Positions 15,951-42,845 of a stretch of 64,000 nucleotides of DNA are shown here, in pieces (position 1 is the first letter of the stretch; every line of letters starts with the position of its first letter). Made by a program: the position numbers and the translations under genes. A model generated the notes under the pieces. That model saw nothing but the letters and a program-made list of their open reading frames with translations, searched no databases and had not been told where the DNA came from. The stretch is from IMG/VR virus record IMGVR_UViG_3300028384_001500, positions 124,001-188,000 of that record; one strand, given 5' to 3'.

Positions 15951-16484
15951 TTAAATCCATTCATCGCTAAAACTATCTTCTTCAATATCAGGTGTCCATC
16001 CCGGGCTATATCTTTGAATTGCTGCGTCGTTTAATTCACCCACATATCTTCCATCGTACAAGTCTTCAACATCAATAATATGTGTAAAGGGAGCGAATCC
16101 AGGACGAGGTGTTCTTAAAAGATTAAGAACTTCACCAACTAAATCCTCGTTTTCTGGATAATGATTTTGTCCTAGAGAATTGTCAAACCTCTTTTGCTTA
16201 ACAACTAGACTTACACCGTTTGGAGATCTAGGTGGCTTAGGTATCTCTATGTGTGTTTCATAAACACTTAAGACTTCACTAAACATTTGTGCAAACTCAA
16301 GTGTGGCAAAATCAGGGTTCTGTATATACGTAAAAAGATAACCGTTTGGTCCGGGCTGTTGATATATGCTAACAGCTCGCATGCCTGGCTTTTTTAAGTG
16401 AGGTGGAAAGTTAACTGGGTATGATTCATAGCCACCAATAGACTCAAATATTAACTTTCTTAACTGTGATATTGTTATTTTCAT
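15951..16484 (-). CDS. Leader-bearing hypothetical protein
   Basis: MKITISQLRKLIFES N terminus. Confidence 0.8.
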   Translation of the reverse strand: MKITISQLRKLIFESIGGYESYPVNFPPHLKKPGMRAVSIYQQPGPNGYLFTYIQNPDFATLEFAQMFSEVLSVYETHIEIPKPPRSPNGVSLVVKQKRFDNSLGQNHYPENEDLVGEVLNLLRTPRPGFAPFTHIIDVEDLYDGRYVGELNDAAIQRYSPGWTPDIEEDSFSDEWI

Positions 16485-17888: not shown

Positions 17889-18697
17889 TAGTAGGCCCCT
17901 TCTACACCACCGTCAATTATAACAAACCGGCCATCTTCTAGGCTTCTTCCAATATTTCCGTAACCTAGATCATTAATGTCATTTTCACTCATAACGTGCA
18001 ATAATAATTGCATGTCCGGGCAATTAAGAATTAAACTTTTTATACTTTCCAACCCTATACTTTCAAGCATACCAGTAACATGAGAATTATTAGCAAACAT
18101 ATAATTAGTCACTGTATTTAACCCATCATTAACAATTTCTTCAATTGTCCAATCGTCATAATTTATATCGTCAGGTAGAAAGGTCATAAATATAGACCCT
18201 ATTAATGAAATATTACCGGTAGTATTGTCAGAATATCGGTTAAATTCTTGCGATAATCTTTGCATACTTTTAAAGCTGCTAATAACTGCTTCTCCTAACC
18301 CATAAGGCGTGTGGATAGGAGGTGTGTTTTCAACAATAAGCCATCTAAACTCTGGGTCATGCACATAAACCTTTGGAAATATTTTGGTATAGCGGTTAAA
18401 TAAATCTATTTCTTTTTTATTGTATTTTACACCGCTATCGTTTCCTATGTCAATGTGAGCAACTTTTGCGACTAAGCCAGGCCGTCCATTAATTTCATAG
18501 ACACCGCGATAACTACCTGCGCCAATATTATCACCAATATTTTCCTCTAGCCAGCCGGGTAATTCTGGATATAGTCTTGAGTCAGCTTTTTCAGGATTAT
18601 CCATTAAACGAGTAATAGTTGGGCCAAAATGCTTTCTTTCTCGATCTGTAAAAGACTCCCATATTAATTGCTTTAACTGACTTCTTGTTATTTTCAT
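17888..18697 (-). CDS. Leader-bearing protein-kinase-like protein
   Basis: IGAGSYRGVY (Gly loop), VAKVA (Lys), helix-C Glu, NDLGYGNIG (catalytic loop), IIDGG (DFG-like). Confidence 0.75.
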   Translation of the reverse strand: MKITRSQLKQLIWESFTDRERKHFGPTITRLMDNPEKADSRLYPELPGWLEENIGDNIGAGSYRGVYEINGRPGLVAKVAHIDIGNDSGVKYNKKEIDLFNRYTKIFPKVYVHDPEFRWLIVENTPPIHTPYGLGEAVISSFKSMQRLSQEFNRYSDNTTGNISLIGSIFMTFLPDDINYDDWTIEEIVNDGLNTVTNYMFANNSHVTGMLESIGLESIKSLILNCPDMQLLLHVMSENDINDLGYGNIGRSLEDGRFVIIDGGVEGAY

Positions 18698-20016: not shown

Positions 20017-20622
20017 TTAATATTCTTCTGAGTCTTCTTCAGGGTCAATTCCAATTGGCTCACCTTTTTTATTTAACATTTTTGGCATTCGAATGTCTCC
20101 TGATGTTAAAGCTTCAAATCCCACGTTAAATTCACTGTATCCGGATTTAATCTCAATATCAAATTCTGCAGCTGCTTGGATCGGTATCTCTGTAATTGCT
20201 CTAAATGTTGCTACGTATTCATTGTAAGGCATGCCGTAACCCTTGATACCCTTCAAGCCGTTCGAATAAGACAGATTTAATTGTTCACCTATATAATTAA
20301 ATAAGATTTGTACACGAGGAATGCTAGAAGTATTTCCTCTTTGTACGCTATAAGGGACTTTATTGTCATCTACATATTTCATTGCTAAAATTAAATCTTT
20401 TACCAGCATCCGATAGAGATCAGGTTTGTATTTAATAAGTGGGTGTATTAGCTTGATAGCATGTTCCATTATTTTGCCAAAAAATAACGCTGACAAAAAG
20501 GGTGGATAAAGTAATGCATTATATGGGGTTTGCTGCACAGACTCCGGATCCCAAGACATCAATTTAATTTGATCATATCCGTCTTCAATTACTTCAAGAC
20601 TAGAAAGCTCATCCATCGGCAA
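20017..20622 (-). CDS. Hypothetical protein, possibly the frameshifted C terminus of 20609..23044
   Basis: No clear RBS; overlaps the upstream ORF; its frame is open further upstream (QVDLAKLLIKYLPMDEL). Confidence 0.55.
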   Translation of the reverse strand: MPMDELSSLEVIEDGYDQIKLMSWDPESVQQTPYNALLYPPFLSALFFGKIMEHAIKLIHPLIKYKPDLYRMLVKDLILAMKYVDDNKVPYSVQRGNTSSIPRVQILFNYIGEQLNLSYSNGLKGIKGYGMPYNEYVATFRAITEIPIQAAAEFDIEIKSGYSEFNVGFEALTSGDIRMPKMLNKKGEPIGIDPEEDSEEY

Positions 20623-23044
20623 ATATTTTATAAGCAGCTTTGCCAGGTCTACTTGAAATACTGTTTATCATTGTTTTGTAAGATTCCTTAACGTCCTCAG
20701 GTTTATTCATGTAACGCATATAATATTGAATCTGTTCTGCAGGATCTGGTATAAAATTCATTTGTTGCACAACACCGCTATCAAGCAATTCTTTTCTAAA
20801 TGGCGTTAATATCCTGCACAATTCTGTATAGTACTTTGTAAATTCAGATATAGCTTTAGATGTACCGATATCAAAACCCGGTATTTTGGCTAGTACAGGC
20901 AACAGATCTCTAAAGACATAATTATACTGCGTGCGAGACCTTAAAAGTGCATCTGTTGCCAACTCAATTAACTCTATTGCCCTAGGAGGAAGTTCGTAAT
21001 CACCTTTAATATGACCCATTATAGGAAAGTGCATCTTAGGTAAAATTGATGCACCCATTTTTATCATATCACCGTCAATATCACTTCCGCTAAATCCATA
21101 GTCTTCTGCTTTCTCAAAAGTCTCTTCCATGATAGGTAAAAATTTATCAAGAATATATTTTTTAACTTCGACACTACTGTTTCCATGATCAAGCATGTTT
21201 TTCATGGCACTAACTAATTCCTTAAGTGCATCAGACATTTGCTTGGACTCAGGTGTAAGATAAAACCCAAATATTTCTTGGATCCTATCATTTAGAACGT
21301 CATCGAATTTACCTGCAAGTATCATTTCTTCAAATTTGCGGTGTGCAGTTCCGACTTGATAGGAACCTGATGTTAATCGCTTTAAAGACTCTGAAATTGC
21401 GGGAATTAACCATGGCAGCTTATGATTGTGAAGAATGCCTTCCATGTTGTCGGTTACTTTAGAAATAAGTAGTTCGCAAATTGATGGATTAAAAACGACA
21501 GATGAAGCGAAAAAATTGGTAAAGAGATTTAAAGATCCTCCTGTAGATCTAAATTGGGATTTTGGTACAAAATCCCACTGGGTTTGATCAGTCATTGGTG
21601 GGTCAAGAAGACCACGCATTTCATAGTCATTTTTTAGTTTTTCAATTATATTATTTCTTTTGTCTTGTGACTCTTTTGAGTGTGGATCAAAAAGAAGGTC
21701 GTCAGTTAGAGTGAGATATGCAATACTTTCTTTAACTTTTTTACTTACTTCTGCATGCGCAGAGCCGATTAGCGATATAACAATATATGGGAATATTCCT
21801 TCTGTTGCCAATTCTGACTGAGCCATTCTGCTGTCTTTAACACGCGGTACATTTCTCATGTAGATATAGTCTAAAACAGAAGAGCTAAGATGAGTACTTC
21901 TAAGAACATTCATTACAAAAGCCATTCGATGGTTTGGTTCAGCTAGTGTTGATAAATGTTCTTTAAAGACTGTTTTGTTTCTTGCACGTGCTCTCAAAGG
22001 TTTTATATCTTGCATACCTATATTTTGTTGCTGTGCCCTATCCTCTTGTGACACACTAGAACCTTCTAAGCCTCCCGGGCCTTTAACAGCAAAGTGACCT
22101 TTAATGTATCTAATTATTTTCTGAGTTGTTTCAGGACCTAAAACTTGAATAAGACTGTCTTCTGTGACGCCATGCTGATTTCCCCAGACACTGGCACCTC
22201 CTGCATTACCAGGAAGCACAATACTGTCTGGGCCTGACCCATTAAAACCAATTGAAAAATTATCATTATATACATTTGGATCATTATAACACTGGTGTTG
22301 TGGGTATAAATTCCTATTGTCGTAAGGCCTGTCAGGTTTTTGTTTGGCTACGTAGTAAAGTGTAATACCTTGTCTAGTATAAGTTTGCCAATGTCCTCCA
22401 TAAACAGTACACCATGCGTTAACACCAATTGCTTGAGCACCTGCCATTGTGTACGGTCTAAGAATATCCCAACCGTCGATTTCCATGTGTCTAATTAGAC
22501 CTAATCCTCCAGAGACGTCTTCGTTTAAGTCCCCACCAATTGCAGCATATTTTTGCGCAATTGCTTCCTCAGCTGCCAATTTAGCATTACCAGAGGAATC
22601 TTCACCTTTAGTCGCTACTCTGTCTTTGCCTACTAGTTTTTCATATGCTTTATTGTTTTTTTGTATAAAGCGAGCATCAATATCGTCAATAATCCCGATT
22701 AGTGTTTTGTAATCAGGAATATTATTAGGATCTAGGTACTCATCGGGTAACACACCTTTTTGCTGGGAGTACTTTTCATGCATAAGCACACAAAAAATAA
22801 TTTGTCCATAGCTAAAATTTTGATATAAAACAAAATTACCGGTCTCATCAGATATAAACTGCCCTATCATTTTATCTAAAAAGCGAAGATACTTGTTTTT
22901 GTTGCGTATCATATTAATCGCTTCTGCATATCCGTACTCCGGCTTATTCATTGCTGGGTATTTATCTAATATGTCTTTGGCTTTAATTTCAAGCAACAAA
23001 GCTTCAAAAATAAGTTTTCTAAAAATTCTACGTGTTAATAACAT
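20609..23044 (-). CDS. Large leader-bearing hypothetical protein
   Basis: MLLTRRIFRKLIFEALLLE; internal AWCTVYGGHWQTY..LYYV motif of a type seen in large-phage proteins. Confidence 0.75.
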   Translation of the reverse strand: MLLTRRIFRKLIFEALLLEIKAKDILDKYPAMNKPEYGYAEAINMIRNKNKYLRFLDKMIGQFISDETGNFVLYQNFSYGQIIFCVLMHEKYSQQKGVLPDEYLDPNNIPDYKTLIGIIDDIDARFIQKNNKAYEKLVGKDRVATKGEDSSGNAKLAAEEAIAQKYAAIGGDLNEDVSGGLGLIRHMEIDGWDILRPYTMAGAQAIGVNAWCTVYGGHWQTYTRQGITLYYVAKQKPDRPYDNRNLYPQHQCYNDPNVYNDNFSIGFNGSGPDSIVLPGNAGGASVWGNQHGVTEDSLIQVLGPETTQKIIRYIKGHFAVKGPGGLEGSSVSQEDRAQQQNIGMQDIKPLRARARNKTVFKEHLSTLAEPNHRMAFVMNVLRSTHLSSSVLDYIYMRNVPRVKDSRMAQSELATEGIFPYIVISLIGSAHAEVSKKVKESIAYLTLTDDLLFDPHSKESQDKRNNIIEKLKNDYEMRGLLDPPMTDQTQWDFVPKSQFRSTGGSLNLFTNFFASSVVFNPSICELLISKVTDNMEGILHNHKLPWLIPAISESLKRLTSGSYQVGTAHRKFEEMILAGKFDDVLNDRIQEIFGFYLTPESKQMSDALKELVSAMKNMLDHGNSSVEVKKYILDKFLPIMEETFEKAEDYGFSGSDIDGDMIKMGASILPKMHFPIMGHIKGDYELPPRAIELIELATDALLRSRTQYNYVFRDLLPVLAKIPGFDIGTSKAISEFTKYYTELCRILTPFRKELLDSGVVQQMNFIPDPAEQIQYYMRYMNKPEDVKESYKTMINSISSRPGKAAYKIFADG

Positions 23045-23468: not shown

Positions 23469-25418
23469 TTAGATTACATCCATATCCAAGCAAGTAACTG
23501 TTCCGTAGAAGTCGGCGCGAACCATTTTCTTTCCGTAACGAGTCATTACACCTTTTCTTGGTGTAAAGTCTTCTGGTGCGAAGATCGTTGGAGTTACGAT
23601 TAATGGTACGTACGGAGCATAGACGTATCCAGACTCTAAGTAAGAACCACCTTTGTAACCTACAAGGATCTTGTTGCGTGGGAAGTAAGGATCTTTGTAA
23701 ACAGTAAATCTGTTAGAAAGAGAACCAATTGCTTCAGCACCAATGTTAGAGATAGCTGCTTGACCTTGACCATCAATTTTGATAGAAGGCTTGTACAATA
23801 CAGAAGCTTCGAAGATAGTAGCAACTTCAGGCGAAACCACGATAAAGTTAGCAGAACCACGAAGTGTCTTTCTGTGAATTTCGTTTGCTACGTCGATGAT
23901 GGTTTCAACAAGAGTTTCATACCATTCACGAACTGTACCAGTGAAAGCAGGACCTGGGTTAAGTGAAGAAGTTCTAGCGATTTCTGCACCTGTTCTCTTG
24001 TTAAGGAATTTACCTGGAGAACGCGACCAGAAGAAGTTAGCACCTTTTGCTTCAACCAAGAGGTCGTTAAGGATTTCACGATCGATTTCCAATGCAATCT
24101 GCTCAGAAAGAATTTGAGTCAATTCAACTTCAGCATCCATTGAGTGATATGCATTCAAGTCTTGAGCGAGTTCTGGAGACCAGCGAGCTCTTAACTTACG
24201 AGTTGTAGCTGTAACAGCAATTGACTCGATCTTGATATCAATCTCTGGAATTACCGGTTCTGGTACAGAGTTAAAGTTAGACTCAAATGATGGAATAACT
24301 AAAGTAGTACCTTCGCCACTTGAGGTTTGATTTTGAACTGAGTCAGCAACTGGGAATGAAGCTGTTAAGTGCATTGCAGCATTTAAAACGTCAGCGTCAC
24401 CAGAAGCGCTTCCACCATCAGCGTGTTGCATCACCATCAAGATACCAGTGTTAGCAGCAGTAATGTCAGCTAATGGGTCTGGAGTAAATGTAATCGCATC
24501 ACGAGCACCAGACATAGTTCCTAACTGGTTAAGGCGTCGAACATTAAGAATATTAGTTCCGCCTTGGATAGTTGGACCAGGAACTGTGAAACCGTTAGTT
24601 GTAGTTTCAGCTGAGAAAAGAGCAACTTGCTTAACTTGAGTTGCGTCAAATCTTCTTTCAGTTGATGCATCTTCAATAACACGTGAAGCTGAAAGTACCA
24701 AGAAAGAGTACTCGTTGTCACCGTTGTTGATTCTAGTCAACAATTGTGGATCGAATTGTAGTAATTTAGCATCAGCACCGCTAGTTCCTGCTACGCCTGT
24801 AGAGCTAGCAGATTGAGCTGCACCAGTACCAAAAGAACCGATCATAGCAAGAGGATTTTCAGATTCAACCAATTTATAAGTTCCGTGAACTTTTGAGTAA
24901 GCTGTACCCACCAAATCATATTGACCACCAGTTGCATCAGAACCGGTACGAATAGACTTACCTACTGGATTATTATAGATTGAATCACCGCGTGAGTAAG
25001 TAGAAGCAACAGTATCGGTTAAGTTACCAGCTGCATCAACACCAGCATCACCACCAACGTCAGATCCGTAAGTGTAGTCTAAGTAGAAAAGAAGACCAGA
25101 TGGAAGTGACATAGGCTGGATAGATACTAATTCGTTAGCAACTAATCCACCGAATACACGACGTACGATTGGGAAAGCGATGTTAGTGAAACCATCAATG
25201 TTTGATCCACCGTTACCACCACCTAAAGTGTTTGCCTCACGAAGAACTTGTGCAGCTTGGTTTTCCATTAAGCGTGCCATGTTTTCGCGGCCGTGACCCT
25301 CAAGTCCTCTTAAAAGACCTGTGCGAGTCCATTTTTCTTGAATTCTGCTAGCTTCGGCACCTACGTGACGATCGCGAATCCCTTCAGTTAATTGATTTAA
25401 AGTAAATGATCTACTCAT
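23469..25418 (-). CDS. Major capsid protein (T4 gp23-like)
   Basis: VSIQPMSLPSGLLFYL, TRKLRARWSPELAQDLNAYH, EIDREIL, YAPYVPL, FTPRKGVMTRY. Confidence 0.97.
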   Translation of the reverse strand: MSRSFTLNQLTEGIRDRHVGAEASRIQEKWTRTGLLRGLEGHGRENMARLMENQAAQVLREANTLGGGNGGSNIDGFTNIAFPIVRRVFGGLVANELVSIQPMSLPSGLLFYLDYTYGSDVGGDAGVDAAGNLTDTVASTYSRGDSIYNNPVGKSIRTGSDATGGQYDLVGTAYSKVHGTYKLVESENPLAMIGSFGTGAAQSASSTGVAGTSGADAKLLQFDPQLLTRINNGDNEYSFLVLSASRVIEDASTERRFDATQVKQVALFSAETTTNGFTVPGPTIQGGTNILNVRRLNQLGTMSGARDAITFTPDPLADITAANTGILMVMQHADGGSASGDADVLNAAMHLTASFPVADSVQNQTSSGEGTTLVIPSFESNFNSVPEPVIPEIDIKIESIAVTATTRKLRARWSPELAQDLNAYHSMDAEVELTQILSEQIALEIDREILNDLLVEAKGANFFWSRSPGKFLNKRTGAEIARTSSLNPGPAFTGTVREWYETLVETIIDVANEIHRKTLRGSANFIVVSPEVATIFEASVLYKPSIKIDGQGQAAISNIGAEAIGSLSNRFTVYKDPYFPRNKILVGYKGGSYLESGYVYAPYVPLIVTPTIFAPEDFTPRKGVMTRYGKKMVRADFYGTVTCLDMDVI

Positions 25419-25455: not shown

Positions 25456-26919
25456 TTATAAACCTGCCAAACGTTGCCATCTACTCAACTCATTGTTGGA
25501 AGACGTTGCGTTTGCCTGTGAAGAAGTAGTTGGGCGAGAAGAACTTCCAAAAACACGAGATTCTGAGATAGTGCTTCTAGTACCACCGGTACTTCTAAAC
25601 GTTTCAGTTAATGACTTATACAAAGATTTTGCTTCAGTCAAAGATTGTGCTTCATCCAAAGCCTTAATAACAGACTTTTTCTGACTTTCGTTAAGACTTT
25701 TGTTCTGCAACAATTTGTTAACATACAAAAGCTTTGCATTAAATAAATTGAGATCTTCCAACTGTTCACGAAGAGAATTAACAGCTCCTCTGTATTTATT
25801 CAGTTTCTCTGACTGAGATCGATTTTGACGTCTCAGCTGGCGAATTGCCTCGTTAAGCTTGTTGATTTGTGGTGGGTTTGTGAACACATCTTGTCCTTCT
25901 TTTCCGCCACCAAAAGCACCCTTAACACCTGCTTTTTTGTTGCCCGTTCCGCCATATGCACCGTTGACACCAGCTTTGCTGCCGCCTTTTCCACCGAAGT
26001 GGTGATCCATTTTACCTTCACGAACTAACCTTTTAACTCTGTTGATTTCTTGGCGAAGAACACGTGGATCAACATTAAAAACTTCGTCCAACTGTTCCTC
26101 TTCACCTTCCGGATCTTCCATGTCCATGCCTTCCATGTCATCCATCTCTGGCATATCCATGTCCATGTCTTCCATACCCATACCAGCACCACCTGCACCA
26201 ACATCTAATTCAAGTTCTGCAATTAGACCTTCAACGGCAGCTGCAACTTCATCTTTTGAAAGCATTGCATCGTCGCCCATGTCTTCACCTTCCATGTCGT
26301 CCATCTCTGGCATATCCATGTCAGCGTCCATTTCTGGTGCTTCTTCTTCGTCTTGTTCTAATAAAGCTGAAAACTGCTCATAAAGTTCTGCCATTTCATC
26401 TGTCTCATCGATGTCATCTTCGTACATGCCCATGCCTTCGTTTGCTTCTTCAGCTTCTAATGATTCCCTTAATGTTCTAAGGTCAACTTCGTAATATTTT
26501 CTAGACATTTTTTCTCCTCTTTTGCTAGATAATTTATTAGCACTTTCATCAAGCTTGTGCGATAAATTTAACAGCTTCTCTCTTTGGTTATCATCCATTG
26601 AGGAAACTGCACCTTTTACAGCACTAAAAAGTGCTTTTTGTGACTTAGACTCATTTAGAGAATCTAAATTTTCTTCACCAATTAAGTTGACTAAAGAAGC
26701 CAATGCTCCTTCGTCAAGATAAACTTCTTCGTCAAGGCTTTCAGAAGTGTCATCATCTTCTGTTTCTTCACTCTCTTTTTCACCTTCAAGCAGCTGCTCT
26801 TCAATAAACTCTCTAATTTGAGGAGTTACTGATTCAAGAATTGCTTTTTTCGCATTTTCTTCTGCAACTTCTTTAAGTTTTTTTGCGTCTGCAATTGCTT
26901 CTTCAAATAATTTGCTCAT
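25456..26919 (-). CDS. Prohead core / scaffold protein (gp22-like)
   Basis: Highly acidic, coiled-coil, many (L/I)xE sites, NLFNAKLLY, C-terminal RWQRLAGL; GAGG RBS favours ATG 26919. Confidence 0.85.
   Translation of the reverse strand: MSKLFEEAIADAKKLKEVAEENAKKAILESVTPQIREFIEEQLLEGEKESEETEDDDTSESLDEEVYLDEGALASLVNLIGEENLDSLNESKSQKALFSAVKGAVSSMDDNQREKLLNLSHKLDESANKLSSKRGEKMSRKYYEVDLRTLRESLEAEEANEGMGMYEDDIDETDEMAELYEQFSALLEQDEEEAPEMDADMDMPEMDDMEGEDMGDDAMLSKDEVAAAVEGLIAELELDVGAGGAGMGMEDMDMDMPEMDDMEGMDMEDPEGEEEQLDEVFNVDPRVLRQEINRVKRLVREGKMDHHFGGKGGSKAGVNGAYGGTGNKKAGVKGAFGGGKEGQDVFTNPPQINKLNEAIRQLRRQNRSQSEKLNKYRGAVNSLREQLEDLNLFNAKLLYVNKLLQNKSLNESQKKSVIKALDEAQSLTEAKSLYKSLTETFRSTGGTRSTISESRVFGSSSRPTTSSQANATSSNNELSRWQRLAGL
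26129..26322. repeat. 35-bp direct repeat (26129..26163 and 26288..26322) encoding DMDMPEMDDMEG
   Basis: ccttccatgtc(a/g)tccatctctggcatatccatgtc occurs twice with one mismatch. Confidence 0.85.
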
Positions 26920-26959
26920 AAGATTAACCTCTGTATGCAATTAATTATTACGATATTTT

Positions 26960-28065: not shown

Positions 28066-28275
28066 TTATTTTCCTTTGATCTTTTTGATTAAAACTTTTT
28101 TCATTTCATGAAGTTGCTTAGCTTCCTTTAAAGACTTCATTTGATAATTTTTTATCTTCTTTAAAAGGCGCAAAGATTCAAGGAGTTTTTTATTTTGCTC
28201 CATTTCAATTTTTTGACGCTCTTCTTTAATTAGTCTTTTAATAGTTTGTGGTGTCAGCTTAAAAACTTTTCTCAT
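28066..28275 (-). CDS. Small basic protein with a leader-like N terminus
   Basis: KLTPQTIKRLIKEE; AGGAG RBS. Confidence 0.7.
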   Translation of the reverse strand: MRKVFKLTPQTIKRLIKEERQKIEMEQNKKLLESLRLLKKIKNYQMKSLKEAKQLHEMKKVLIKKIKGK

Positions 28276-34354: not shown

Positions 34355-34609
34355 TTAATTTTTATAAAGTTTACGCTTTATAGATATATAACTTCTAACA
34401 TCAGTTTTATTAGGACGCCAGCCATTTTTCCATTCATTTCTTCTAGACTCAGCAAAGTTAAGATAACAATCATTACAACAATTGTATTCTCTATTTTTTT
34501 CAAAATCTTCAGAAGAAGCCAATGGGAACTGACAAACCGGACAATAAAAATTTTCTTTTTTAAAATTGCCAATTACTTTAATTTTAGGGCTGGTAGACAT
34601 ACGAATCAA
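34355..34609 (-). CDS. Small zinc-finger protein
   Basis: CPVC...CCNDC, WKNGWRP. Confidence 0.7.
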   Translation of the reverse strand: MIRMSTSPKIKVIGNFKKENFYCPVCQFPLASSEDFEKNREYNCCNDCYLNFAESRRNEWKNGWRPNKTDVRSYISIKRKLYKN

Positions 34610-37600
34610 CTCCTTTTCTCATGATATCGATGTTATTGTCAACGACGTCTTTAATCTCATCAATGTGAGATATTACTACAATATTTTTAAACCACTTTTT
34701 AAGGGTATGTAATAACTTACCACAAGCTTCTAAGTTTGTTTCATCTAGCGCACCAAAACCTTCATCAATCATCAGCATGTTTGTCTTGGGAAGAGAAGAT
34801 ACGTTAATTAAGGCTACTCTAATTGCAAGGGATGCCATCATTTTTTCCATACCAGATCCAAGCTCTATAATTCTCTTACTATCTCCGTAGTTAATAAATA
34901 TATCCATTGTGTTGCTATCTAGGTCAGCTTCTAGATCTACTGTAAACCCAACAACCCCTTTTAAAATTTTAGATATCTCTGTGTTAATCTGGGGTAGCAT
35001 GGCGTGTATAATTTGCACAGGTATACCTTTGTTTGATGTTGCCTGTATAAAAAGATCATATACTCTTAAAGCTTTGCTAATCTTTTCATATTCTTTCTTT
35101 TGTTTGACTAGCACATTTTTTTCTGCTTTTTCTTTTGCCAATTTTGTAATCATTCCTGTTCTTTTGGCGTCTGATTCTCTAATTAGACTATTTGTTTGGC
35201 TAATTCTTTTTTCTGCAAGAATATGTGCATTATCTGTTTCTTGACTATCATAGCGTTCTTTTAAGTCTTTGTATTCTTTTTCAAATGTCAAAATATTAGG
35301 CTTAAGATTGTCGATGTCTTTTTCATAACCTTTAATTTTTATCTTAATCGATGATATTGACGTGACTAGTTCAGACTTTTTCTGCAATATTGCATTGTAT
35401 TTGTCCAATTCTTCACTGTAATCTTTTCTTCCTAATTTTCTAAAAGCAGCCTTAAGATCGTCTACTTTTACTTTAAGCGCCGTTACTTTGTCTCGCTGTT
35501 TTTCTAGTTTTCTTTTATTTGAGTGAGACTCTTTTATAAACTTGCATTTAGGAAACTGATCACCACAAGGCACTTCTTTCAACTTTTCCACAGACTTTTC
35601 AATAAATGATAGTTCTTTTCTTTCGTATTTTAAATCGCTTTGCATTGAAGAAAGCAAAGACTCAATTTGTTTTTGGGCATCTCTTTTTTCTCTTATCTCA
35701 TCTGGGTTAATGTTACTTAAAAACAGATCTACTTTAGATATTTTTTGGTCTGTTTCAAATATTTCATCTTTTAAGTTATCCCGCTTAGTTATTAAATTTT
35801 CCAAAGACTTAGTTGCCACGTTCCATTTCTGCTCGGCAATTGATACTTGTGCGCCGGTTATGTAATCAGGTTTGACATTTGAATGTAAATCCTTTACATA
35901 GGCTTCATAGTCTTCTCTTAACTTTTCTAGCTTTTCTTCTTCTTTCTTAATAGACGTCTTTATTTCACTAATAGAGTACTCCTTTAGACCTATTTGTTTA
36001 TCCCAGTCACCTTTATTTAAGGTTTGTGCCTGCTGTTTAAGTGAAGCTGCTTCTTTTTTTGCATACTCATTCATTCCGTCAAAAACAGTTAAATCTAAAA
36101 AGTTTGCTAAAATAGCTTTTCTTGCACTGGCTTTTTCTTTAATAAAATTGTTCATATCACCCTGTGAGGCTAATGAAGTCATCAAAAACTCTTCAGGCCC
36201 ACCAATCATACCTCTAATAATCTTTTCTGTTTCTCTGCGTTGCTCTTCAGTAAGATCTTCTATGATATCACCCGACTTATCAAGTTTGTAAAACTTAAGT
36301 GTTGTAGGTGCCCAAACATTTTTCTTTGTCTGTTTCTTGACTGTTTGCCTAATAATTCGATACGGTACGTTATTAATTGATATATCTAATTCTGCCTTGC
36401 AAGAATTTTTTCTTGTATTAATCAAATGGATATTTTTAATTGAGCCTCGATCTGAGGTGTTAAATAGAGTGTATGCAATAGTACCAATAATAGATGACTT
36501 ACCTCTAGCATTTCTGCCAAAGATACCTGTGATGCCGGGCAAGTTTTCAAAATTAATAAAATTTCCGTCTTTGTAAGAAAAGCAATTATCAAACTTAAGA
36601 CTATTAATCGACCACCTGACATTTCTTAAATCCCTATCAGATTGTGCTATTTCTGAAAGACTTCTATCGACTAAGTCGTCTAGTTTTGTTAGATCATTAT
36701 CTGACAAATTGTTACTTTTATAATACTCTCTAATCAATTCCTTATGCTTATCAGGGCTTCGCAAGTCAATTGACATTGTTTTACCTGAGCTTGTTTGAAT
36801 TGTATCTGATTCAAACTTTGATTCAACTTTAAAAACAACCTCAGAAGCAGCCTTTTGCTTTGTTAGTATTTTTTGAAGCCTTCTTGCATCAGCTTGACTA
36901 ATGTAGTTATCAGCACGAATTCTAAATCTTGAAAGATTAGGATACTCTTTGCATTTATTGTACGTCTTTTGTACGTCACCTTGCCAATCAACTGTTACAA
37001 AATGATATCTGTTTTCAACAGGGTAGAACTGACATGTAAAATTGTCAGCATCTTTAATATCCCATAGTAAAAACCCTTTTTCGTTATCTTCACCAAAGTT
37101 TTGCTGAATTGTAGATCCGCAGTAGGCAATGGTTTCTTTTTTATTTAAGAACTGTCGTTTGTGAATGTCACCTAGCATTGCAAAGTCATATGATTTAAAG
37201 AGATCTAATGTAGACTCGCCTTCTAGTTGCCAGTCTACATCAGTAAGACTACCTCTTACAGCACCGTGATACAATGCAATGCTGACATTGTCTTTTGACG
37301 GTTTTGCCTTAAAGAAGTTTTCTTCATCAAAGCAAGATAACACACACCATTCAAACCCTGGAGCAAACTCATAAGTACCCGACTTTTTGTACAGGCGTAT
37401 CCTAGGGTTGTCTAATGCTTCAATAATAGGTGTAATAGCATCTTGCCTATCTCTATTTAGTATAAGGCCGTCATGGTTTCCGAGAATGACATGTGTTGGT
37501 GCTATTTTAGCCAGGCCATTAAACCACCAACACAAGTTTTGTATTAACTCTGGGGATATTCCTTGGGTCTTAGAATGTACAATATCACCACCTACATAGA

Positions 37601-37715
37601 TAATATCAGGCTGCAGCTCTTCAGCTTGCCTAAATAGGTCTTTAAATGCTAAAACGTATTCTTGATGGCGAGAAAGTCCTCGCCAGTGGATATCAGCTAT
37701 GTGTAGTATTTTCAT
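34584..37715 (-). CDS. Fused SbcD/Mre11 nuclease + SbcC/Rad50 ATPase (gp47-gp46-like)
   Basis: ADIH, GGDIVH, GNHD, GDIH phosphoesterase motifs; GRNARGKSS Walker A, coiled coil with CGDQFPKC, GSGME signature, IDEGFGALD, ISH. Confidence 0.92.
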   Translation of the reverse strand: MKILHIADIHWRGLSRHQEYVLAFKDLFRQAEELQPDIIYVGGDIVHSKTQGISPELIQNLCWWFNGLAKIAPTHVILGNHDGLILNRDRQDAITPIIEALDNPRIRLYKKSGTYEFAPGFEWCVLSCFDEENFFKAKPSKDNVSIALYHGAVRGSLTDVDWQLEGESTLDLFKSYDFAMLGDIHKRQFLNKKETIAYCGSTIQQNFGEDNEKGFLLWDIKDADNFTCQFYPVENRYHFVTVDWQGDVQKTYNKCKEYPNLSRFRIRADNYISQADARRLQKILTKQKAASEVVFKVESKFESDTIQTSSGKTMSIDLRSPDKHKELIREYYKSNNLSDNDLTKLDDLVDRSLSEIAQSDRDLRNVRWSINSLKFDNCFSYKDGNFINFENLPGITGIFGRNARGKSSIIGTIAYTLFNTSDRGSIKNIHLINTRKNSCKAELDISINNVPYRIIRQTVKKQTKKNVWAPTTLKFYKLDKSGDIIEDLTEEQRRETEKIIRGMIGGPEEFLMTSLASQGDMNNFIKEKASARKAILANFLDLTVFDGMNEYAKKEAASLKQQAQTLNKGDWDKQIGLKEYSISEIKTSIKKEEEKLEKLREDYEAYVKDLHSNVKPDYITGAQVSIAEQKWNVATKSLENLITKRDNLKDEIFETDQKISKVDLFLSNINPDEIREKRDAQKQIESLLSSMQSDLKYERKELSFIEKSVEKLKEVPCGDQFPKCKFIKESHSNKRKLEKQRDKVTALKVKVDDLKAAFRKLGRKDYSEELDKYNAILQKKSELVTSISSIKIKIKGYEKDIDNLKPNILTFEKEYKDLKERYDSQETDNAHILAEKRISQTNSLIRESDAKRTGMITKLAKEKAEKNVLVKQKKEYEKISKALRVYDLFIQATSNKGIPVQIIHAMLPQINTEISKILKGVVGFTVDLEADLDSNTMDIFINYGDSKRIIELGSGMEKMMASLAIRVALINVSSLPKTNMLMIDEGFGALDETNLEACGKLLHTLKKWFKNIVVISHIDEIKDVVDNNIDIMRKGVDSYVYQP

Positions 37716-37725
37716 ATTGGAGTCC

Positions 37726-39084
37726 TTATTCTTTCATTACCACTTTGGTATCTTTTTTGTCAATTTGGAATTGTGGTTCGCACCCTGGTATTATAACCCA
37801 GCATCTTTTAGATTTACAAGGTTTTGGTTTAGGTGCATAGCCATCAGTCATAATAATATAGCCATCATATTTAGCAATATGCTTTCTAAAGTGATCCTCG
37901 ACACAGTTAAAACAAGTACCTCCGCCCCTAGTTCTATATGCTTTTCGAACTGTTTTATTCTTTTTCCAGACAAACTCACTCTCTTCATCGACTGCTGTAT
38001 CGAAGTGATAGATGGTAAACGTTACCCGTTTTGCCAATTCATTAAGTGTATTGAATAGTAATTGCAATTCATGATCGCCAACGGATCCGGATTGGTCAAT
38101 ATAGACTGCAATGTTAGATGTGTAACTTGTTTTTCGACCTGGATGAATGTATGGGTATTTCTTATTAATACGCTTATAAGTTCTAGAGCGATTAGCTTTT
38201 TGCTTAGAACCACAGAAATATCTCAATACATTTCGCCAGTCGATTTCATCGGAAAACATTGCTTGGATTTCCCCTTGCATGCTAGCTCCAACTGAACCCC
38301 ATGAACGATTTTTGTTTGCTCGATTTGCAGCTTTTTTAACAATCTCTTTAATTTTAGCATCGGCCATGGCTTTTTCAGCATCAGTAAGCTCTTCATCAAA
38401 GTGATGATCAAAACCTTGACCGGGCTGACCGTTACCAAATCCGTGTTCGCAAGAGCCATTCCCTCCACCACCAGAACCTTCGTCATCACCAGAACCATCT
38501 TCAGAACCATCACCAGAACCACACATTGGACAGCTACCTGTGCCTTTTTGCCCCATAGACTCCTGAATGGCATCTTGAATATCTTCATCAGACATGATTT
38601 TTTCCATGTACCATTCAGATGCCTTATTTAAAGGTAGCGATTTGATAAAGTCACTCATTTGGATTTGTTCTGGCGTTGGGGTATAATCTTTAGGAAATAC
38701 TGTTGCTTGGCCAGGAACTAATCCGCCGTCAGGTAATTCATCAAGCGGTATTGTTGAGTTAATTGCCAAATCAGTTGCAATATTCCACATGAGGTGTGGC
38801 TTTTGCTTTCTACCTGTAACATGTTTATAAATCAAATGATAACATTCGTGCTTAAGTAATCCAAACACTTTTTTTGTTGTTAGCTTGCCAACAAAGTCTG
38901 GGTTCCAATGCAGAGTAAATTCTCCTCCGGAACATGAAACACCAGCTGTTGGTATGGCATAGGTTTTTTGTCGACGAATATGACTCATTATATCTGAAAA
39001 GAAAGGCTCATTTAATAAGAATTTAAGCATAATCTTTTTAAATCTTTCATCAGTTAATTCTTCTTTTGTTAAGGCATCTACCAT
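37726..39084 (-). CDS. Metallopeptidase-like + vWA domain protein (DUF2201-type)
   Basis: KHECYH, WNIATDLAIN, IDQSGSV (MIDAS), GGGT, MTDG. Confidence 0.85.
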   Translation of the reverse strand: MVDALTKEELTDERFKKIMLKFLLNEPFFSDIMSHIRRQKTYAIPTAGVSCSGGEFTLHWNPDFVGKLTTKKVFGLLKHECYHLIYKHVTGRKQKPHLMWNIATDLAINSTIPLDELPDGGLVPGQATVFPKDYTPTPEQIQMSDFIKSLPLNKASEWYMEKIMSDEDIQDAIQESMGQKGTGSCPMCGSGDGSEDGSGDDEGSGGGGNGSCEHGFGNGQPGQGFDHHFDEELTDAEKAMADAKIKEIVKKAANRANKNRSWGSVGASMQGEIQAMFSDEIDWRNVLRYFCGSKQKANRSRTYKRINKKYPYIHPGRKTSYTSNIAVYIDQSGSVGDHELQLLFNTLNELAKRVTFTIYHFDTAVDEESEFVWKKNKTVRKAYRTRGGGTCFNCVEDHFRKHIAKYDGYIIMTDGYAPKPKPCKSKRCWVIIPGCEPQFQIDKKDTKVVMKE

Positions 39085-39106
39085 GTTTCCTCCTGTGGTT
39101 GTTTAT

Positions 39107-39134
39107 ATTATACACTAAGGTATGTGCTGTTACA
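39107..39134 (-). promoter_or_regulatory. TGTAAC-N16-TATAAT promoter
   Basis: One of three identical-architecture copies. Confidence 0.75.
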
Positions 39135-39147
39135 TTATTAGAGGTTA

Positions 39148-40212
39148 TTAGATATCGTTTGCTGCATTAACAACTTTAACAACCTTACCACCTAAGAATT
39201 TGTGGAACTTTTTGATATTGTCAAGGTGTTTTGTTTCCATTAACATGTTCATAAAGTTAACCAACATTTCATCGGAACAACTATCAATAAATGATGAGGC
39301 TGTCTTTGCTTGAGTAACCGTTACATCATTTGTTTTTAAATAAGTAATTGTGATACTCAATAAGTCATTCTTTTTATCGTTTGTCAACTTATCAATTCGG
39401 CTTTTGACACCACCTTTGTCATTATGATAACGATTAAGCAAGTCTTTTGCACTAAACTTTGATTGGTGGTTTTTGACATAGTCACTAAAAGCAACTGTGC
39501 CAGCCTCGCCAATAAAACCTAACCCGATAGAGAAGATAAGACTGTCATAATCTTCACCACAGTGTGTAGATGGATCTAGGTTTGCGTGTTTAAGTGCTTT
39601 ATCAAATCGAGCCCATGATGCAGGATTAGGATAAACAATACCTGGTTCAAATGTACCAGTATGACGAAGTCGAGCAGGATATTTCTTAATAAACCCAATA
39701 GTAAGAGGGTCAATATTACCAACATTTTCAGCCCATTCTAACCAGTCATCAGTTGTTGGTTCTAAGTCAATAGACCAAAAACGACGAAGAAGAGCAGGAT
39801 CCATTTCAGTAACTTGGTAGTCGCTGCCTTCATTAACTGCTGCATAGACACGGGTTTCTGGGTGGAGCTTGTGACCGTTAAGTTCTCGATCCAATACAAT
39901 TTGGAAAGCACATTGTTGTACTTCTAAAGTTGCACGGTTAAGCTCATCGAAGAATAAGACTCGAGGTTCATTACAAGCTTCAATAAACCAATTGACTGGT
40001 GCAAATCTTGTTGTGCCATCGACCAATTCTGGAAGACCAATGAGGTCACCCTCTGTCATGTATGAAAGTCGTCGATCCAATACTTCTAATCCGATTTCTT
40101 TACCAATTTGGTGAAAGATATGTGATTTACCAATACCGGTTGGTCCTTTTACTAATACTGAAATTTCTGGTGGAAGGTTTGATACTACTTTTACGAAGGT
40201 TTTGATATCCAT
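39148..40212 (-). CDS. MoxR-like AAA+ ATPase
   Basis: GPTGIGKS, DLIGLP, LFFDELNRA, MDPALLRRF, NPASW. Confidence 0.9.
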   Translation of the reverse strand: MDIKTFVKVVSNLPPEISVLVKGPTGIGKSHIFHQIGKEIGLEVLDRRLSYMTEGDLIGLPELVDGTTRFAPVNWFIEACNEPRVLFFDELNRATLEVQQCAFQIVLDRELNGHKLHPETRVYAAVNEGSDYQVTEMDPALLRRFWSIDLEPTTDDWLEWAENVGNIDPLTIGFIKKYPARLRHTGTFEPGIVYPNPASWARFDKALKHANLDPSTHCGEDYDSLIFSIGLGFIGEAGTVAFSDYVKNHQSKFSAKDLLNRYHNDKGGVKSRIDKLTNDKKNDLLSITITYLKTNDVTVTQAKTASSFIDSCSDEMLVNFMNMLMETKHLDNIKKFHKFLGGKVVKVVNAANDI

Positions 40213-40274: not shown

Positions 40275-40796
40275 TTAGTCAACTTCAATTTTCTTAAGCC
40301 CTTTAGCGTATATCCATCTAAACCCACCTGTGGTAAGTATTTGATATTGTGTGTTATCTGTAACTACCCTTGAACCTGTATAATCGGCAATACCTCGATT
40401 ATCAATAGACTCTTTAACAATTATACCATATAAGTCTTCGCTTGCACCGTAGAGTCGACCTGGAAGTACAACTAAGTCTCCAATACCGCAGTTCCATTTC
40501 ATCTGTCGTCGTCTAGTTTTTGGTATCTTGCCTTTTACTTCTTTTTTAATCTTTCTAAGCTTTTGCTTTTGAGTTTGTTGAAGTTGACCTGATTGAGCTG
40601 CTTCTTGTCTTTGTTTTTCTAGGGCTGCTTTAACTTCTGCAAGAGTTGTTGGTACTTTTTCCTCTTCTGGTTGCTGTGTATTGCCACTTTCTTTTAAGCC
40701 AAGTTCTTCAATTTTCTTTTGGGCTTCTTCCTCAGCTTTTTGCTTACGAACTTTTTCTTTAATGGCTTTTAATTGTTGTCTATTTAACTTTGCCAT
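40275..40796 (-). CDS. Hypothetical protein: charged N terminus plus SH3/KOW-like C terminus
   Basis: AGGAGG RBS; IGDLVVL...GIIV beta pattern. Confidence 0.7.
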   Translation of the reverse strand: MAKLNRQQLKAIKEKVRKQKAEEEAQKKIEELGLKESGNTQQPEEEKVPTTLAEVKAALEKQRQEAAQSGQLQQTQKQKLRKIKKEVKGKIPKTRRRQMKWNCGIGDLVVLPGRLYGASEDLYGIIVKESIDNRGIADYTGSRVVTDNTQYQILTTGGFRWIYAKGLKKIEVD

Positions 40797-40857: not shown

Positions 40858-42126
40858 TTACAAAAGTTTGTTAATTTTATCAGGTTGCATGTGCGCAACA
40901 ATATTATCTATGTACCTGTCACCAATCATGGTATTGACCTTTTCAAAGTCAAAATCACAATCTGATGCTAGTATAATCCTACCAGAACGACCGTTACCGT
41001 CACAAAATGGATGTATGTATTCATAAAGAATATGTCGTAACCACGGATGACTAGAGTGCGCATGACATTTCTTAAGCTTTTGATTTAATTCATAAGGTTC
41101 CGGATATTGACACCCTGATGGTGAACTATGTGAATAGTTTCTAAACTCACCCGGTGATCCTTTCTCTAATATATTTTGATCAAAACACTTGTGAATATGA
41201 CAGATTTTATGATTATTGTCAATCTTACCTAGTTTATTTGCCATGACTAAACCGTTAATCTGAGAATTGATGTGAGGGCAGTTTGTAATATGTTTAGGTG
41301 GTACGCCCATCATTAAGTATTTTGCTGCTTCAAAGCAGTCGCTATATTCTAAATTAAACTTTTCAATTCCTGACGTTCTTTGCAAGAAATAAGCCAGATC
41401 ATGACATGTATCTTTGAGATTGTCACTTTTAGATCTAAGTTTTTCTGCAAAATTTTTATAATGTTTTTTAGATAGAGTCTTGTCAATATTACTAGCATTT
41501 TCGTTGTTGAATATATCAGCTAACGTTTCTCCTATAAGCCTTCCGTATTCTACATCTGTTGGATAGTGTACAGCATTTTCTATTCTTGACTGCCCTATTA
41601 ACGATGATAAGGTTTGCAAATCTTGTTTTATTTCTGGTATCGCATTTGAAAGTACATCACAAAGAAAGTATGCAATTGCTGTATGCCCGGATGGAAACGA
41701 CGGTGACTTTTTATATTTAACTTTCAAGTCTTTGTCAGCATCTTTAAGATAATGTATAGGGCGAGGCCTATTATTGTCATATTTTAATTTTAAAACAACG
41801 GTATCAACGTCGTCTAAAACATCCTTAATTTTCTTCCAGTCTATGTTTCGATATCCGTTTTCTTTACAATAAGACCTAAATATGTCTTCAACACTATCAT
41901 CAGAGTTTTTAAGAAAAGAAGTCGACATGCAAGGATTATTATGACACCGTTGGACTTCTTCTATGTCTGATTTAAATCCTTTTGTATTTTCAGCTGGGTG
42001 CTTTAAGACAGGTAATCTATCCATGCAATCGTGGGGAAGATATCTATATCTTCTGGACATTCTATCAGCATGCCCTTTATCAATATCTAATTTTGTTTCC
42101 TCAAATAGATTTAAAATAGATCTCAT
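40858..42126 (-). CDS. PAP2-family phosphatase fused to a Fic domain
   Basis: KYDNNRPRP, SFPSGH, SRIENAVHYPTD (three PAP2 motifs); C-terminal HPFCDGNGRSGR (canonical Fic motif). Confidence 0.85.
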   Translation of the reverse strand: MRSILNLFEETKLDIDKGHADRMSRRYRYLPHDCMDRLPVLKHPAENTKGFKSDIEEVQRCHNNPCMSTSFLKNSDDSVEDIFRSYCKENGYRNIDWKKIKDVLDDVDTVVLKLKYDNNRPRPIHYLKDADKDLKVKYKKSPSFPSGHTAIAYFLCDVLSNAIPEIKQDLQTLSSLIGQSRIENAVHYPTDVEYGRLIGETLADIFNNENASNIDKTLSKKHYKNFAEKLRSKSDNLKDTCHDLAYFLQRTSGIEKFNLEYSDCFEAAKYLMMGVPPKHITNCPHINSQINGLVMANKLGKIDNNHKICHIHKCFDQNILEKGSPGEFRNYSHSSPSGCQYPEPYELNQKLKKCHAHSSHPWLRHILYEYIHPFCDGNGRSGRIILASDCDFDFEKVNTMIGDRYIDNIVAHMQPDKINKLL

Positions 42127-42845
42127 TAATACTCATCGTGAAAGTCATAGTCTAAAGAGTGATATACTTCTGATATATCATCTGCAATTTGTGCAATTTT
42201 TGTACGTTGCCAGTCATCTAATTCATATCCGTCAGGGATCATTTGTAAAAGTTTTTGTGAGTATTTTGCAACCTTATACAATGACGGTTTTGCCATGTAA
42301 TTATTATTGTGATATTTATGCCCGTCTAATTTACCGTCATGATCATGATGATGTTTATACGCATCGACTGCATATCCTGCTCCAGTTAAAGTACCTAAAG
42401 CATTACCAATCATACCCATTGTATCTATTGAATAATCTGATCCGTCGTCTGAGCATCCTGCACATGTGCCGCATCCGCAACCTCCTTCATTCAGCATTTC
42501 ACCCATGTAACCGCATTCCATGCATTCACCTTCGTACATTGAACCACCACATTGCTCACACATTTTGCCTTCTAAAATAGAAGACTCCATTGCACCACAC
42601 TGTTCACACATGCCTTCAAATACTGAGTTGCTTCCACACTTGTGACAGCTACTTCCTCCACCGAAGTCATCAAAAGAGTCGACATGTTTTGTTAAATTTA
42701 GATTATGAGGAGCACGTGCTTGTGAACGATATCCTGTATCTCTGTAGCTGTCTTTTCCTCGGGCGATTAATGCGTCTTCTCCTACCATTTTTGCCATTTC
42801 TTGCATGATCAAACGCCTAATCATGTTTTTTGATAATTTGCTCAT
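42126..42845 (-). CDS. Leader-bearing Cys-rich protein with zinc-ribbon-like repeats and a helical C-terminal domain
   Basis: KLSKNMIRRLIMQE; repeated CxxCG; His-rich linker. Confidence 0.7.
   Translation of the reverse strand: MSKLSKNMIRRLIMQEMAKMVGEDALIARGKDSYRDTGYRSQARAPHNLNLTKHVDSFDDFGGGSSCHKCGSNSVFEGMCEQCGAMESSILEGKMCEQCGGSMYEGECMECGYMGEMLNEGGCGCGTCAGCSDDGSDYSIDTMGMIGNALGTLTGAGYAVDAYKHHHDHDGKLDGHKYHNNNYMAKPSLYKVAKYSQKLLQMIPDGYELDDWQRTKIAQIADDISEVYHSLDYDFHDEY

Follow-up and report, generated by a model that had tools for sequence, protein, structure and literature searches.

The locus analyzed here raises the question of what a single phage protein that joins a PAP2-type phosphatase domain to a Fic domain may do, and whether it would act at the moment of DNA entry or be made in the cell afterwards. 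The locus lies in a 64,000-nucleotide stretch of DNA (positions 124,001 to 188,000 of IMG/VR record IMGVR_UViG_3300028384_001500; hereafter the window, with positions counted from its first nucleotide), and the protein, tentatively referred to as PAP2-Fic, is encoded on the minus strand. PAP2-Fic is an uncharacterized combination of two known kinds of enzyme, and the searches made here place it in a single clade of marine T4-like phages only. We favor, with a probability of roughly 0.45, a reading in which it is a head-packaged, injected, Glu-gated effector with two active sites that would act on phosphoryl and nucleotidyl marks at the onset of infection. The gene and its parts are as follows.

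40858-42126, minus strand: PAP2-Fic open reading frame (ORF), 422 residues plus a stop codon at 40858-40860, from translation
42094-42126, minus strand: N-terminal peptide MRSILNLFEET, residues 1-11, the best-conserved segment, disordered in the model (predicted local distance difference test, pLDDT, 56)
41506-42093, minus strand: PAP2 half, residues 12-207, predicted soluble class A (PhoN-type), from PF01569, PDB profile, and structural alignment
41758-41784, minus strand: PAP2 motif 1, KYDNNRPRP (K115, R122, P123), invariant in a 114-sequence alignment, translation-verified
41683-41694, minus strand: PAP2 motif 2, PSGH (residues 145-148), invariant in the same alignment, translation-verified
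41554-41589, minus strand: PAP2 motif 3, SRIENAVHYPTD (residues 180-191), with R181, H187, and D191 invariant, translation-verified
41419-41505, minus strand: helical linker, residues 208-236, the least conserved segment of the fusion
40861-41418, minus strand: Fic half, residues 237-422 (PF02661), with end-to-end homology to free-standing phage Fic proteins of ~200 residues
41359-41376, minus strand: inhibitory-helix-type motif TSGIEK (T251 to E255), family consensus T-N-x-I-E-[N/G/..]
40978-41013, minus strand: Fic catalytic motif HPFCDGNGRSGR (residues 372-383; H372 to R383), translation-verified

A two-domain protein of marine phages

The ORF is a single uninterrupted frame that starts with ATG and the N-terminus MRSILNLFEE, and the standard genetic code is sufficient to read it, with no alternative code required. 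It contains all three class A signatures (KX6RP, PSGH, and SRX5HX3D) and an intact Fic motif, and both domains score above their Pfam gathering cut-offs (PF01569, residues 110-203, 51.1 bits vs. 27.2; PF02661, residues 307-386, 31.5 bits vs. 24), well beyond what chance would give. A first-pass annotation, made from the letters of the window, had described the three PAP2 motifs and the Fic motif in one 422-residue chain with this start; translation bears this out and adds the strand, which had not been given. We are highly confident of the identity and integrity of the two domains, and PAP2-Fic is, by prediction from its sequence, a two-domain enzyme with all catalytic residues kept in both halves.

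A word-index search recovered 194 homologues, with identities ranging from 95% down to ~40% and falling into ~25 clusters at 50%; among the 120 of them that were listed, most are 405-441 residues long and carry both Pfam domains. They were found in JGI, ENA, Tara, NCBI, and Logan assemblies, the longest of their contigs reaching 220 kb, and all are viral and marine. When 1.84 billion cluster representatives were searched exhaustively with a profile (23,674 hits), ~25 clusters matched over the full length, with fragments and single-domain proteins ranking after them, and the ESM Atlas holds two PAP2+Fic clusters (54 and 156 members), both 100% viral. Among the matches listed for 185,579 prokaryotic species genomes there was no full-length relative, only weak single-domain ones, so that absence from cellular genomes also rests on the exhaustive profile search. 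INPHARED phages gave no full-length match and no near-DNA match, only weak PAP2-only protein matches, and BFVD gave no two-domain match. A search of sequencing runs found word shares of up to 0.08, in marine, seawater, and estuary metagenomes, with no RNA run among the matches. We found no publication joining PAP2, a Fic domain, and phage, and the architecture is not listed in surveys of Fic enzymes, the PAP2 superfamily, jumbo phages, or polyvalent proteins. What had been flagged as an unusual pairing is therefore a genuine and intact one, represented by viral sequences only and by none in the cellular, cultured-phage, or UniProt viral sets searched; it is recurrent in marine viromes, and uncharacterized rather than common and already characterized.

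Conservation was counted over 114-125 homologues, down to 38% identity. In the 125 full-length members, K115, R122, P123, PSGH, R181, H187, and D191 of the PAP2 half and H372, F374, D376, G377, N378, G379, R380, and R383 of the Fic half are invariant or nearly so. The sole variation within PAP2 motif 3 is a Ser to Thr exchange at S180, and HxFx(D/E)GNGRxxR is found in all but one of the homologues (124/125). Naturally split variants, described below, make a mis-joining of two genes by assembly or gene calling conceivable in principle; its probability is nevertheless negligible, as the frame is free of stops, the 194 homologues come from independent assemblies, the gene order recurs in eight long viral contigs, and the protein is modeled confidently as a single chain with a structured linker.

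An AlphaFold2 model built from the 114-sequence alignment (pLDDT 92.5, predicted template modeling score, pTM, 0.89) was compared with known structures. The PAP2 half aligns best with class A phosphatases (8yc1, 1eoi, 2a96, and 7f17; Z 18-19.6, root-mean-square deviation ~3 Å over ~196-200 residues), above membrane PAP2 enzymes (Z ~15) and vanadium haloperoxidases (Z 14-16), and its PDB profile match to PhoN has an E-value of 3e-16. Neither a signal peptide nor a membrane segment was found in PAP2-Fic (maximum Kyte-Doolittle value in a 19-residue window, 0.94). The PAP2 half is predicted to be a histidine phosphatase of class A (PhoN-type) that is soluble and has no export signal. It shares with the reference enzymes (PhoN of Salmonella, 2a96/2akc; EB-NSAP of Escherichia blattae, 1d2t/1eoi; and those of P. 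aeruginosa, 7f17, and Shigella, 8yc1) the three motifs with the catalytic Lys, Arg, His, and Asp and an all-helical fold, with ~196-200 of ~220 residues aligned, but only ~18-22% identity. Unlike the periplasmic class A enzymes, it has no signal peptide, which would make it cytoplasmic or virion-borne, and it is covalently joined to a Fic domain. The MCF1-SHE proteins LnaB and SidL belong to the same superfamily, in which the scaffold also handles AMP transfer and metabolite substrates (both transfer AMP, SidL onto a metabolite), and diffusible PAP2 clades occur in conflict systems (PMC13431035). Unlike LnaB and SidL, PAP2-Fic retains the classical phosphatase motifs instead of the S-H-E triad, and no Fic fusion appears in the architecture tables of that study.

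The Fic half aligns with Clostridioides difficile CdFic (4x2d, Z 15.4) and human FICD (Z 15.3) over ~170-180 residues, and a PDB profile search was concordant with these structural matches. In BLASTP, its residues ~235-410 match standalone phage Fic proteins at 35% identity (L010, 2e-40) and 31% identity (L011, 4e-32). Upstream of the core, residue 251 is Thr or Ser in 120/125 homologues and E255 is present in 119/125, while the residue after E255 is Gly or Asn in only 50/125. T251xxxE255 aligns with SNxIEG of the standalone phage proteins (SNKIEG and SNEIED being examples); the alignment ranges to FICD (model 234 onward placed on FICD 213 onward, an offset of 21) would put E255 on FICD E234, a correspondence taken from the ranges; and the PADLOC SoFic model matches the Fic half from residue 251 onward. 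In the classification of Engel et al. from 2012, a Glu-bearing helix N-terminal to the core in the same chain is said to mark class II Fic proteins. The Fic half is, by prediction, a minimal class II Fic of ~185 residues, gated by Glu255 on a helix just upstream of its core. As in human FICD/HYPE, CdFic, and Shewanella SoFic, HPFx(D/E)GNGRxxR, the core fold, and a same-chain [ST]xxxE are present; unlike these proteins, it is minimal, has no tetratricopeptide repeat or winged helix-turn-helix domain, is variable after the Glu, is fused to PAP2, and is encoded by a phage.

The label of AMPylase in the first-pass annotation therefore holds for the presence of a Fic domain and not for a sole or default activity, given the conserved inhibitory-type Glu. 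By analogy, AMPylation is just one of several possible activities of the Fic half, because the Glu-bearing FICD can both add and remove AMP, and because a Fic-antitoxin complex is described as capable of deAMPylation (PMC13327609).

Several features suggest that the two halves work together. Mean identity is 0.59 in the N-terminus, 0.55 in PAP2, 0.48 in Fic, and 0.32 in the linker. In two Tara assemblies, a split variant occupies the same syntenic slot (L169, 181-999; L170, 133-927), with the C-terminal end of the upstream partner gene (see below) followed by a complete 203-residue PAP2-only ORF (start MSFFKSLFKETK), a 111-nt spacer at the position of the linker, and an ORF that opens with the first part of the Fic half; on another contig (L171), a Fic-only ORF with SNKIEG is followed by a homologue of the 173-residue gene that lies downstream of PAP2-Fic. 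Among 151 single-domain loci, no locus had both domains as separate genes within 10 kb on either side, the split variant having come from the exhaustive search. The structural alignments to phosphatases extend into the Fic half, to residues ~307-314, and these ranges together with the high pTM suggest that a helix contributed by the Fic half takes the place of the C-terminal helix of the phosphatase and completes that domain, to form a rigid two-domain body. Since the halves are adjacent in the split form, fused elsewhere, and joined through a rigid predicted interface, we consider it quite likely that they are one functional unit.

Upstream partner, N-terminal peptide, and possible head packaging

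The carrier is a linear IMG/VR record of 236,652 bp, ~77% complete and with a GC content of ~35%, and its marine habitat is indicated concordantly by Tara sample names and by the metagenome labels of sequencing runs. It encodes a gp20-type portal, a large terminase subunit, a gp23-type major capsid protein, and a gp21-type prohead protease, and is therefore read, from these head and packaging genes, as an uncultured, marine, distantly T4-like large myovirus. Three further genes bear on whether PAP2-Fic may be packaged.

42126-42845, minus strand: upstream partner of PAP2-Fic, 239 residues, with the leader MSKLSKNMIRRLIMQE, a variable Cys-rich zinc-ribbon middle, and a conserved C-terminal domain of ~60 residues
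28873-29475, minus strand: T4 gp21-type prohead core serine protease (Pfam Peptidase_S77, 96.4 bits; phrog_207)
25456-26919, minus strand: acidic ORF in the gp22/scaffold slot between the protease and the major capsid protein, starting MSKLFEEA from an internal ATG

The scaffold-slot ORF had been listed as 25456-26940 with a TTG start, which is probably wrong, the internal ATG being at 26919; its product is probably a coiled coil and has many (L/I)xE sites.

The stop codon of the partner gene overlaps the start codon of PAP2-Fic (TAATG), as expected from the coupling to a leader-bearing gene that had been noted earlier. PAP2-Fic has no Shine-Dalgarno sequence of its own, while both neighboring genes have strong ones; because of this and the overlap, translational coupling to the partner is very likely on sequence grounds. 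The middle of the partner is hypervariable, with CxxC pairs and with insertions and deletions between relatives, and hardly any variation occurs in the C-terminal ~60 residues (..NNYMAKPSLYKVAKY..DDISEVYHSLDYDF). Family and fold searches gave no assignment for it, and the ESM Atlas offers a poor model with a faint likeness to a double zinc ribbon. Prediction of a complex between the two proteins scored 0.00, which is no evidence either way. A class I Fic toxin-antitoxin arrangement (as in FicT/FicA and VbhT/VbhA) was considered and rejected: the partner is 239 residues long and zinc-ribbon-rich, and the [ST]xxxE motif lies inside the Fic chain. The only antitoxin-type motif in the partner, SSILEG, sits inside an insertion that is absent from all seven homologues (7/7).

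The leader of the partner is recurrent. A sequence of the form ~MK(I/L)T(R/K)(R/K)QLRx(L/I)IxE(S/A) opens 20 of the 303 ORFs of the virus, compared with ~1.9 expected; those in the window, all on the minus strand, are at 12571-13863, 15099-15947, 15951-16484, 17888-18697, 20609-23044, 28066-28275, and 42126-42845, six of them within or just downstream of the head module. T4 gp21 cleaves at sites of the (L/I)-x-E pattern, and this pattern forms the end of the leader, so that the 20 ORFs may encode a large group of core proteins or of cargo packaged into the head. For two of the leader-bearing proteins, no match was found in INPHARED phages. Outside this virus, the closest Fic-only relative (L011) opens with the canonical leader, and a 381-residue protein (P0232; L168, 174-1319) combines the canonical MKITKRQLRKFIRES leader with a RelA/SpoT-type HD domain (alarmone-hydrolase-like) and the PAP2 module. 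In another phage, a gene on a 28.6-kb contig (P0224; L166, 5145-7676) encodes an 843-residue Phage_portal protein (PF04860) with the same PAP2 module at its C-terminus and adjoins a large terminase gene (TerL) of the GpA type.

Other recurrent N-terminal motifs occur in PAP2-only viral ORFs (L013, L016, L017, L024-L026, and L028) and in L018, L035, L036, and L038. Standalone viral PAP2 proteins begin with motifs such as MxWxxILK... or MLLNE(I/E)IxRIKxLM, several of these motifs preceding very basic stretches, and they may be lineage-specific leaders of virion cargo.

The N-terminus of PAP2-Fic itself has the family consensus M-[KR]-S-[IL]-x-x-L-F-[ED]-E-T (L7 in 113/125 homologues, F8 in 120/125, T11 in 107/125), with hydrophobic residues at positions 4, 7, and 8 and Glu at 10, in the same register as MKTYQEFIAE of the T4 internal proteins IPII and IPIII. 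In the 10-residue capsid targeting sequence (CTS) of T4, residues 4 and 7 serve targeting and residues 8 and 10 serve cleavage by gp21 after the Glu (PMC9026906), and a 7-residue N-terminal propeptide is removed from T4 Alt (PMC9026906; PMC3012670). That T4-type phages package diverse effectors behind a CTS is an established concept (PMC3012670; PMC9026906). A CTS-like pattern is found in 64/125 PAP2-Fic homologues under a strict definition and in 102/125 under a relaxed one. The string LFEE occurs twice in ~80,800 residues of ORF translations, both times at an N-terminus, namely in PAP2-Fic and in the scaffold-slot ORF, and the N-terminus of the latter, MSK[LI]FEEA, is kept in four relatives.

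PAP2-Fic thus resembles the T4 internal head proteins and Alt in its association with a T4-type head module and in a ~10-residue N-terminal peptide in the MKTYQEFIAE register. Alt, likewise an enzyme, attaches covalent modifications to host proteins upon entry (PMC9026906). Unlike Alt, an ADP-ribosyltransferase, PAP2-Fic would combine a phosphatase with a Fic enzyme, and it has no sequence homology to the T4 cargo outside the short peptide. Polyvalent proteins, which likewise carry several effector enzymes per polypeptide and are thought to enter with the DNA, were described by Iyer et al. (2017; PMC5512222); PAP2-Fic differs from them in having two domains and no MuF, peptidase, or DNA-binding 'header', and neither that survey nor a jumbo-phage survey mentions PAP2 or Fic. 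The earlier suggestion that PAP2-Fic may be packaged gains indirect support from the CTS-like N-terminus, the gp21-type protease, the N-terminus of the scaffold-slot ORF, and the portal-PAP2 fusion elsewhere; we regard head packaging as a tentative proposal, at slightly less than even odds.

Possible roles of PAP2-Fic in infection

In the reading that we favor, PAP2-Fic would be produced by translational coupling with its leader-bearing zinc-ribbon partner, recruited into the prohead core by the CTS-like N-terminal peptide, trimmed by the gp21-type protease after Glu9 or Glu10, and delivered into the host along with the DNA. Upon entry into the new host cell, both sites would jointly process phosphate-ester marks: the Fic site would add a nucleoside monophosphate (NMP) to a hydroxyl or, with the Glu in place, remove one, and the PAP2 site would hydrolyze a phosphomonoester or a terminal pyrophosphate on the same target or on a nucleotide by-product. 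The target would be a host protein or a phospho- or nucleotidyl mark generated by a defense system, and PAP2-Fic would be a take-over or counter-defense effector similar to T4 Alt with a different chemistry. The canonical Fic precedent and Alt as a functional parallel are the grounds for a protein target, and we see the chances of a protein vs. a nucleotide or RNA substrate as evenly balanced.

Several observations weigh against packaging and the rest of this scheme. The CTS-like pattern is present at 2 of the 303 ORF N-termini, where ~1 is expected, and its match in any single sequence is not significant, so that it counts through its conservation in the family and through the match to the scaffold-slot protein (p roughly 0.03). 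The strict leader is carried by 1/70 standalone viral homologues (L011) and 1/81 cellular ones, and the idea that all standalone homologues carry it was dropped. When the 237-kb genome was scanned with a position-specific scoring matrix of the PAP2-Fic N-terminus, no further copy came up, and this N-terminus differs from the 20-member leader. The T4 late-promoter motif TATAAATA has three matches in the window vs. ~8 expected, none of them on the coding strand, a count that is itself uninformative, and the gene lies amid replication and recombination genes (primase, RuvC, SbcCD), outside the head module. That both sites act on one target is suggested by pTM, alignment ranges (308-311), and the adjacency of the split genes. 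Finally, the fusion of the closest module relatives to RNA and nucleotide enzymes speaks against a protein target.

These fusions point to a different role, in which PAP2-Fic would be an RNA-end or nucleotide-signal counter-defense enzyme with both sites acting on nucleic-acid ends or small nucleotides. In the closest relatives of the Fic module, the fusion partners are a PolyA_pol/CCA-adding nucleotidyltransferase (P0178), an ATP-dependent ligase nucleotidyltransferase domain (P0276), and 2H phosphoesterases of the LigT/Acb1 type (P0249 and P0253, of which one is Acb1-like). In relatives of the PAP2 module they are NUDIX domains (two proteins), an AAA_33-type P-loop kinase (P0185, in which the PAP2 module is combined with NUDIX, DUF4269, and the kinase), and the RelA/SpoT-type HD hydrolase of P0232; both modules occur in larger multi-domain viral proteins of up to 1526 residues. 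The neighboring genes also encode nucleic-acid enzymes, and the AMP transfer by LnaB and SidL described above shows that the chemistry of the PAP2 superfamily is wider than phosphatase activity. Candidate targets would be tRNA 3' ends or anticodon-loop breaks bearing phosphate, pyrophosphate, or extra nucleotides, as well as alarmone or cyclic-nucleotide signals; the PAP2 site would heal them by removing phosphate or pyrophosphate and the Fic site would add or remove NMP, a chemistry that fits either packaging or early expression. A functional analogue would be T4 Pnkp, a bifunctional end-healing kinase/phosphatase that acts with RNA ligase and is likewise a T4-type bifunctional phosphoryl-transfer enzyme; its folds (P-loop kinase and HAD phosphatase) are unrelated, and the link of PAP2-Fic to RNA consists of the domain fusions. 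To our knowledge, however, all characterized Fic enzymes with the canonical HPFx(D/E)GNGRxxR modify protein hydroxyls. The partner domains are known only from single representatives of their clusters, and the association is suggestive only, since the fused domains of multi-effector polyvalent proteins often have unrelated targets (PMC5512222). We consider this role somewhat unlikely. Rather improbable is its boldest form, in which the Fic and PAP2 domains of this family would form an injected RNA or nucleotide 'eraser' that strips phosphate, pyrophosphate, or NMP marks left by abortive-infection toxins of the host on tRNA ends or destroys nucleotide alarms, the small phage Fic proteins from which the Fic domain derives perhaps likewise not being directed at proteins; if true, this would provide the first nucleic-acid or nucleotide substrate of a canonical Fic enzyme, delivered from a phage head.

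The position of the gene within the replication and recombination block and the statistical insignificance of the CTS pattern alone would also be explained if PAP2-Fic were not packaged and instead were an intracellular take-over or regulatory enzyme, made after infection, that AMPylates or deAMPylates a host or phage protein (e.g., gyrase/topoisomerase IV, EF-Tu, or RNA polymerase), with its conserved N-terminus serving partner binding, stability, or translation initiation. The match of the Fic half to the SoFic defense model is in line with this, as are bacterial Fic toxins that act on GyrB/ParE and the deAMPylating Fic-antitoxin complexes (PMC13327609). Speaking against it are the conservation of a disordered N-terminal peptide beyond that of the catalytic domains, the LFEE shared with the scaffold-slot protein, the existence of a portal-PAP2 fusion, and the relatives with a leader, and we judge it unlikely. 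A role as an auxiliary metabolic gene is very improbable; in P-poor sea water, the PAP2 half would then release phosphate that is bound in organophosphates or host nucleotides, and the task of the Fic half would be limited to regulating it. The habitat is marine, class A acid phosphatases are broad phosphomonoesterases, and one homologue is named 'acid phosphatase (class A)' by JGI; but external substrates would be out of reach of a protein with neither signal peptide nor membrane segment, the catalytic motif of the Fic half varies no more than those of the PAP2 half, and the partners of the modules elsewhere are conflict-type enzymes or a portal rather than transport or Pho-regulon genes.

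Fic enzymes are found among bacterial toxins, secreted effectors, and, more recently, anti-phage defense proteins, and we know of almost nothing on their use by phages apart from Doc of P1. Here, a clade of abundant large marine phages keeps a Fic domain, predicted to be Glu-gated, fused or, in one variant, adjacent to a predicted soluble histidine phosphatase. If the injected two-site effector that we favor is correct, it would add a new chemistry to the few enzymes injected by phages, a list headed so far by the T4 ADP-ribosyltransferase Alt, and would offer the Fic field a compact model, with two active sites, of coupled phosphoryl and nucleotidyl editing. The N-terminal peptide and the 20-member leader family would then give a sequence handle for predicting capsid cargo in uncultured T4-like phages.

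Gene neighborhood of the carrier phage

All non-nested ORFs of at least 120 residues are on one strand, and no tRNA gene was found in the 64-kb window. The nearest cultured relatives of the portal, at ~40% identity, are in Microcystis phage Mel-JY01 and Flavobacterium phage immuto. The genes around PAP2-Fic, read in order along the coding strand, encode primase, the 239-residue Cys-rich partner, PAP2-Fic, a 173-residue Lys-rich protein, a MoxR-type AAA ATPase, a DUF2201 metallopeptidase/VWA protein, and an SbcCD fusion, and this order is kept in eight IMG/VR contigs. Seven of these contigs have a homologue of the Cys-rich partner immediately upstream of PAP2-Fic; in the eighth (L007), BLAST detected none. 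The two most divergent contigs are without the 173-residue, MoxR, and DUF2201 genes and retain the pair of Cys-rich partner and PAP2-Fic. The immediate downstream neighbor is as follows.

40275-40796, minus strand: lysine-rich protein, 173 residues, a syntenic neighbor in 6/8 relatives that also adjoins the Fic-only variant L171

Further downstream, a MoxR-type AAA_5 ATPase is paired with the DUF2201 metallopeptidase/VWA protein (37726-40212, minus strand), an arrangement present in six relatives. The SbcCD fusion (34584-37715, minus strand) joins SbcD (Metallophos) and SbcC (AAA_23/SbcC Walker B) in one polypeptide of 1043 residues, with 57-91% identity across the clade. In the head module, the major capsid protein (23469-25418, minus strand; 649 residues) has a long N-terminal extension, as its gp23-type match is confined to residues ~375-632, and its N-terminus MSRSFTLNQLTEG is kept in relatives.

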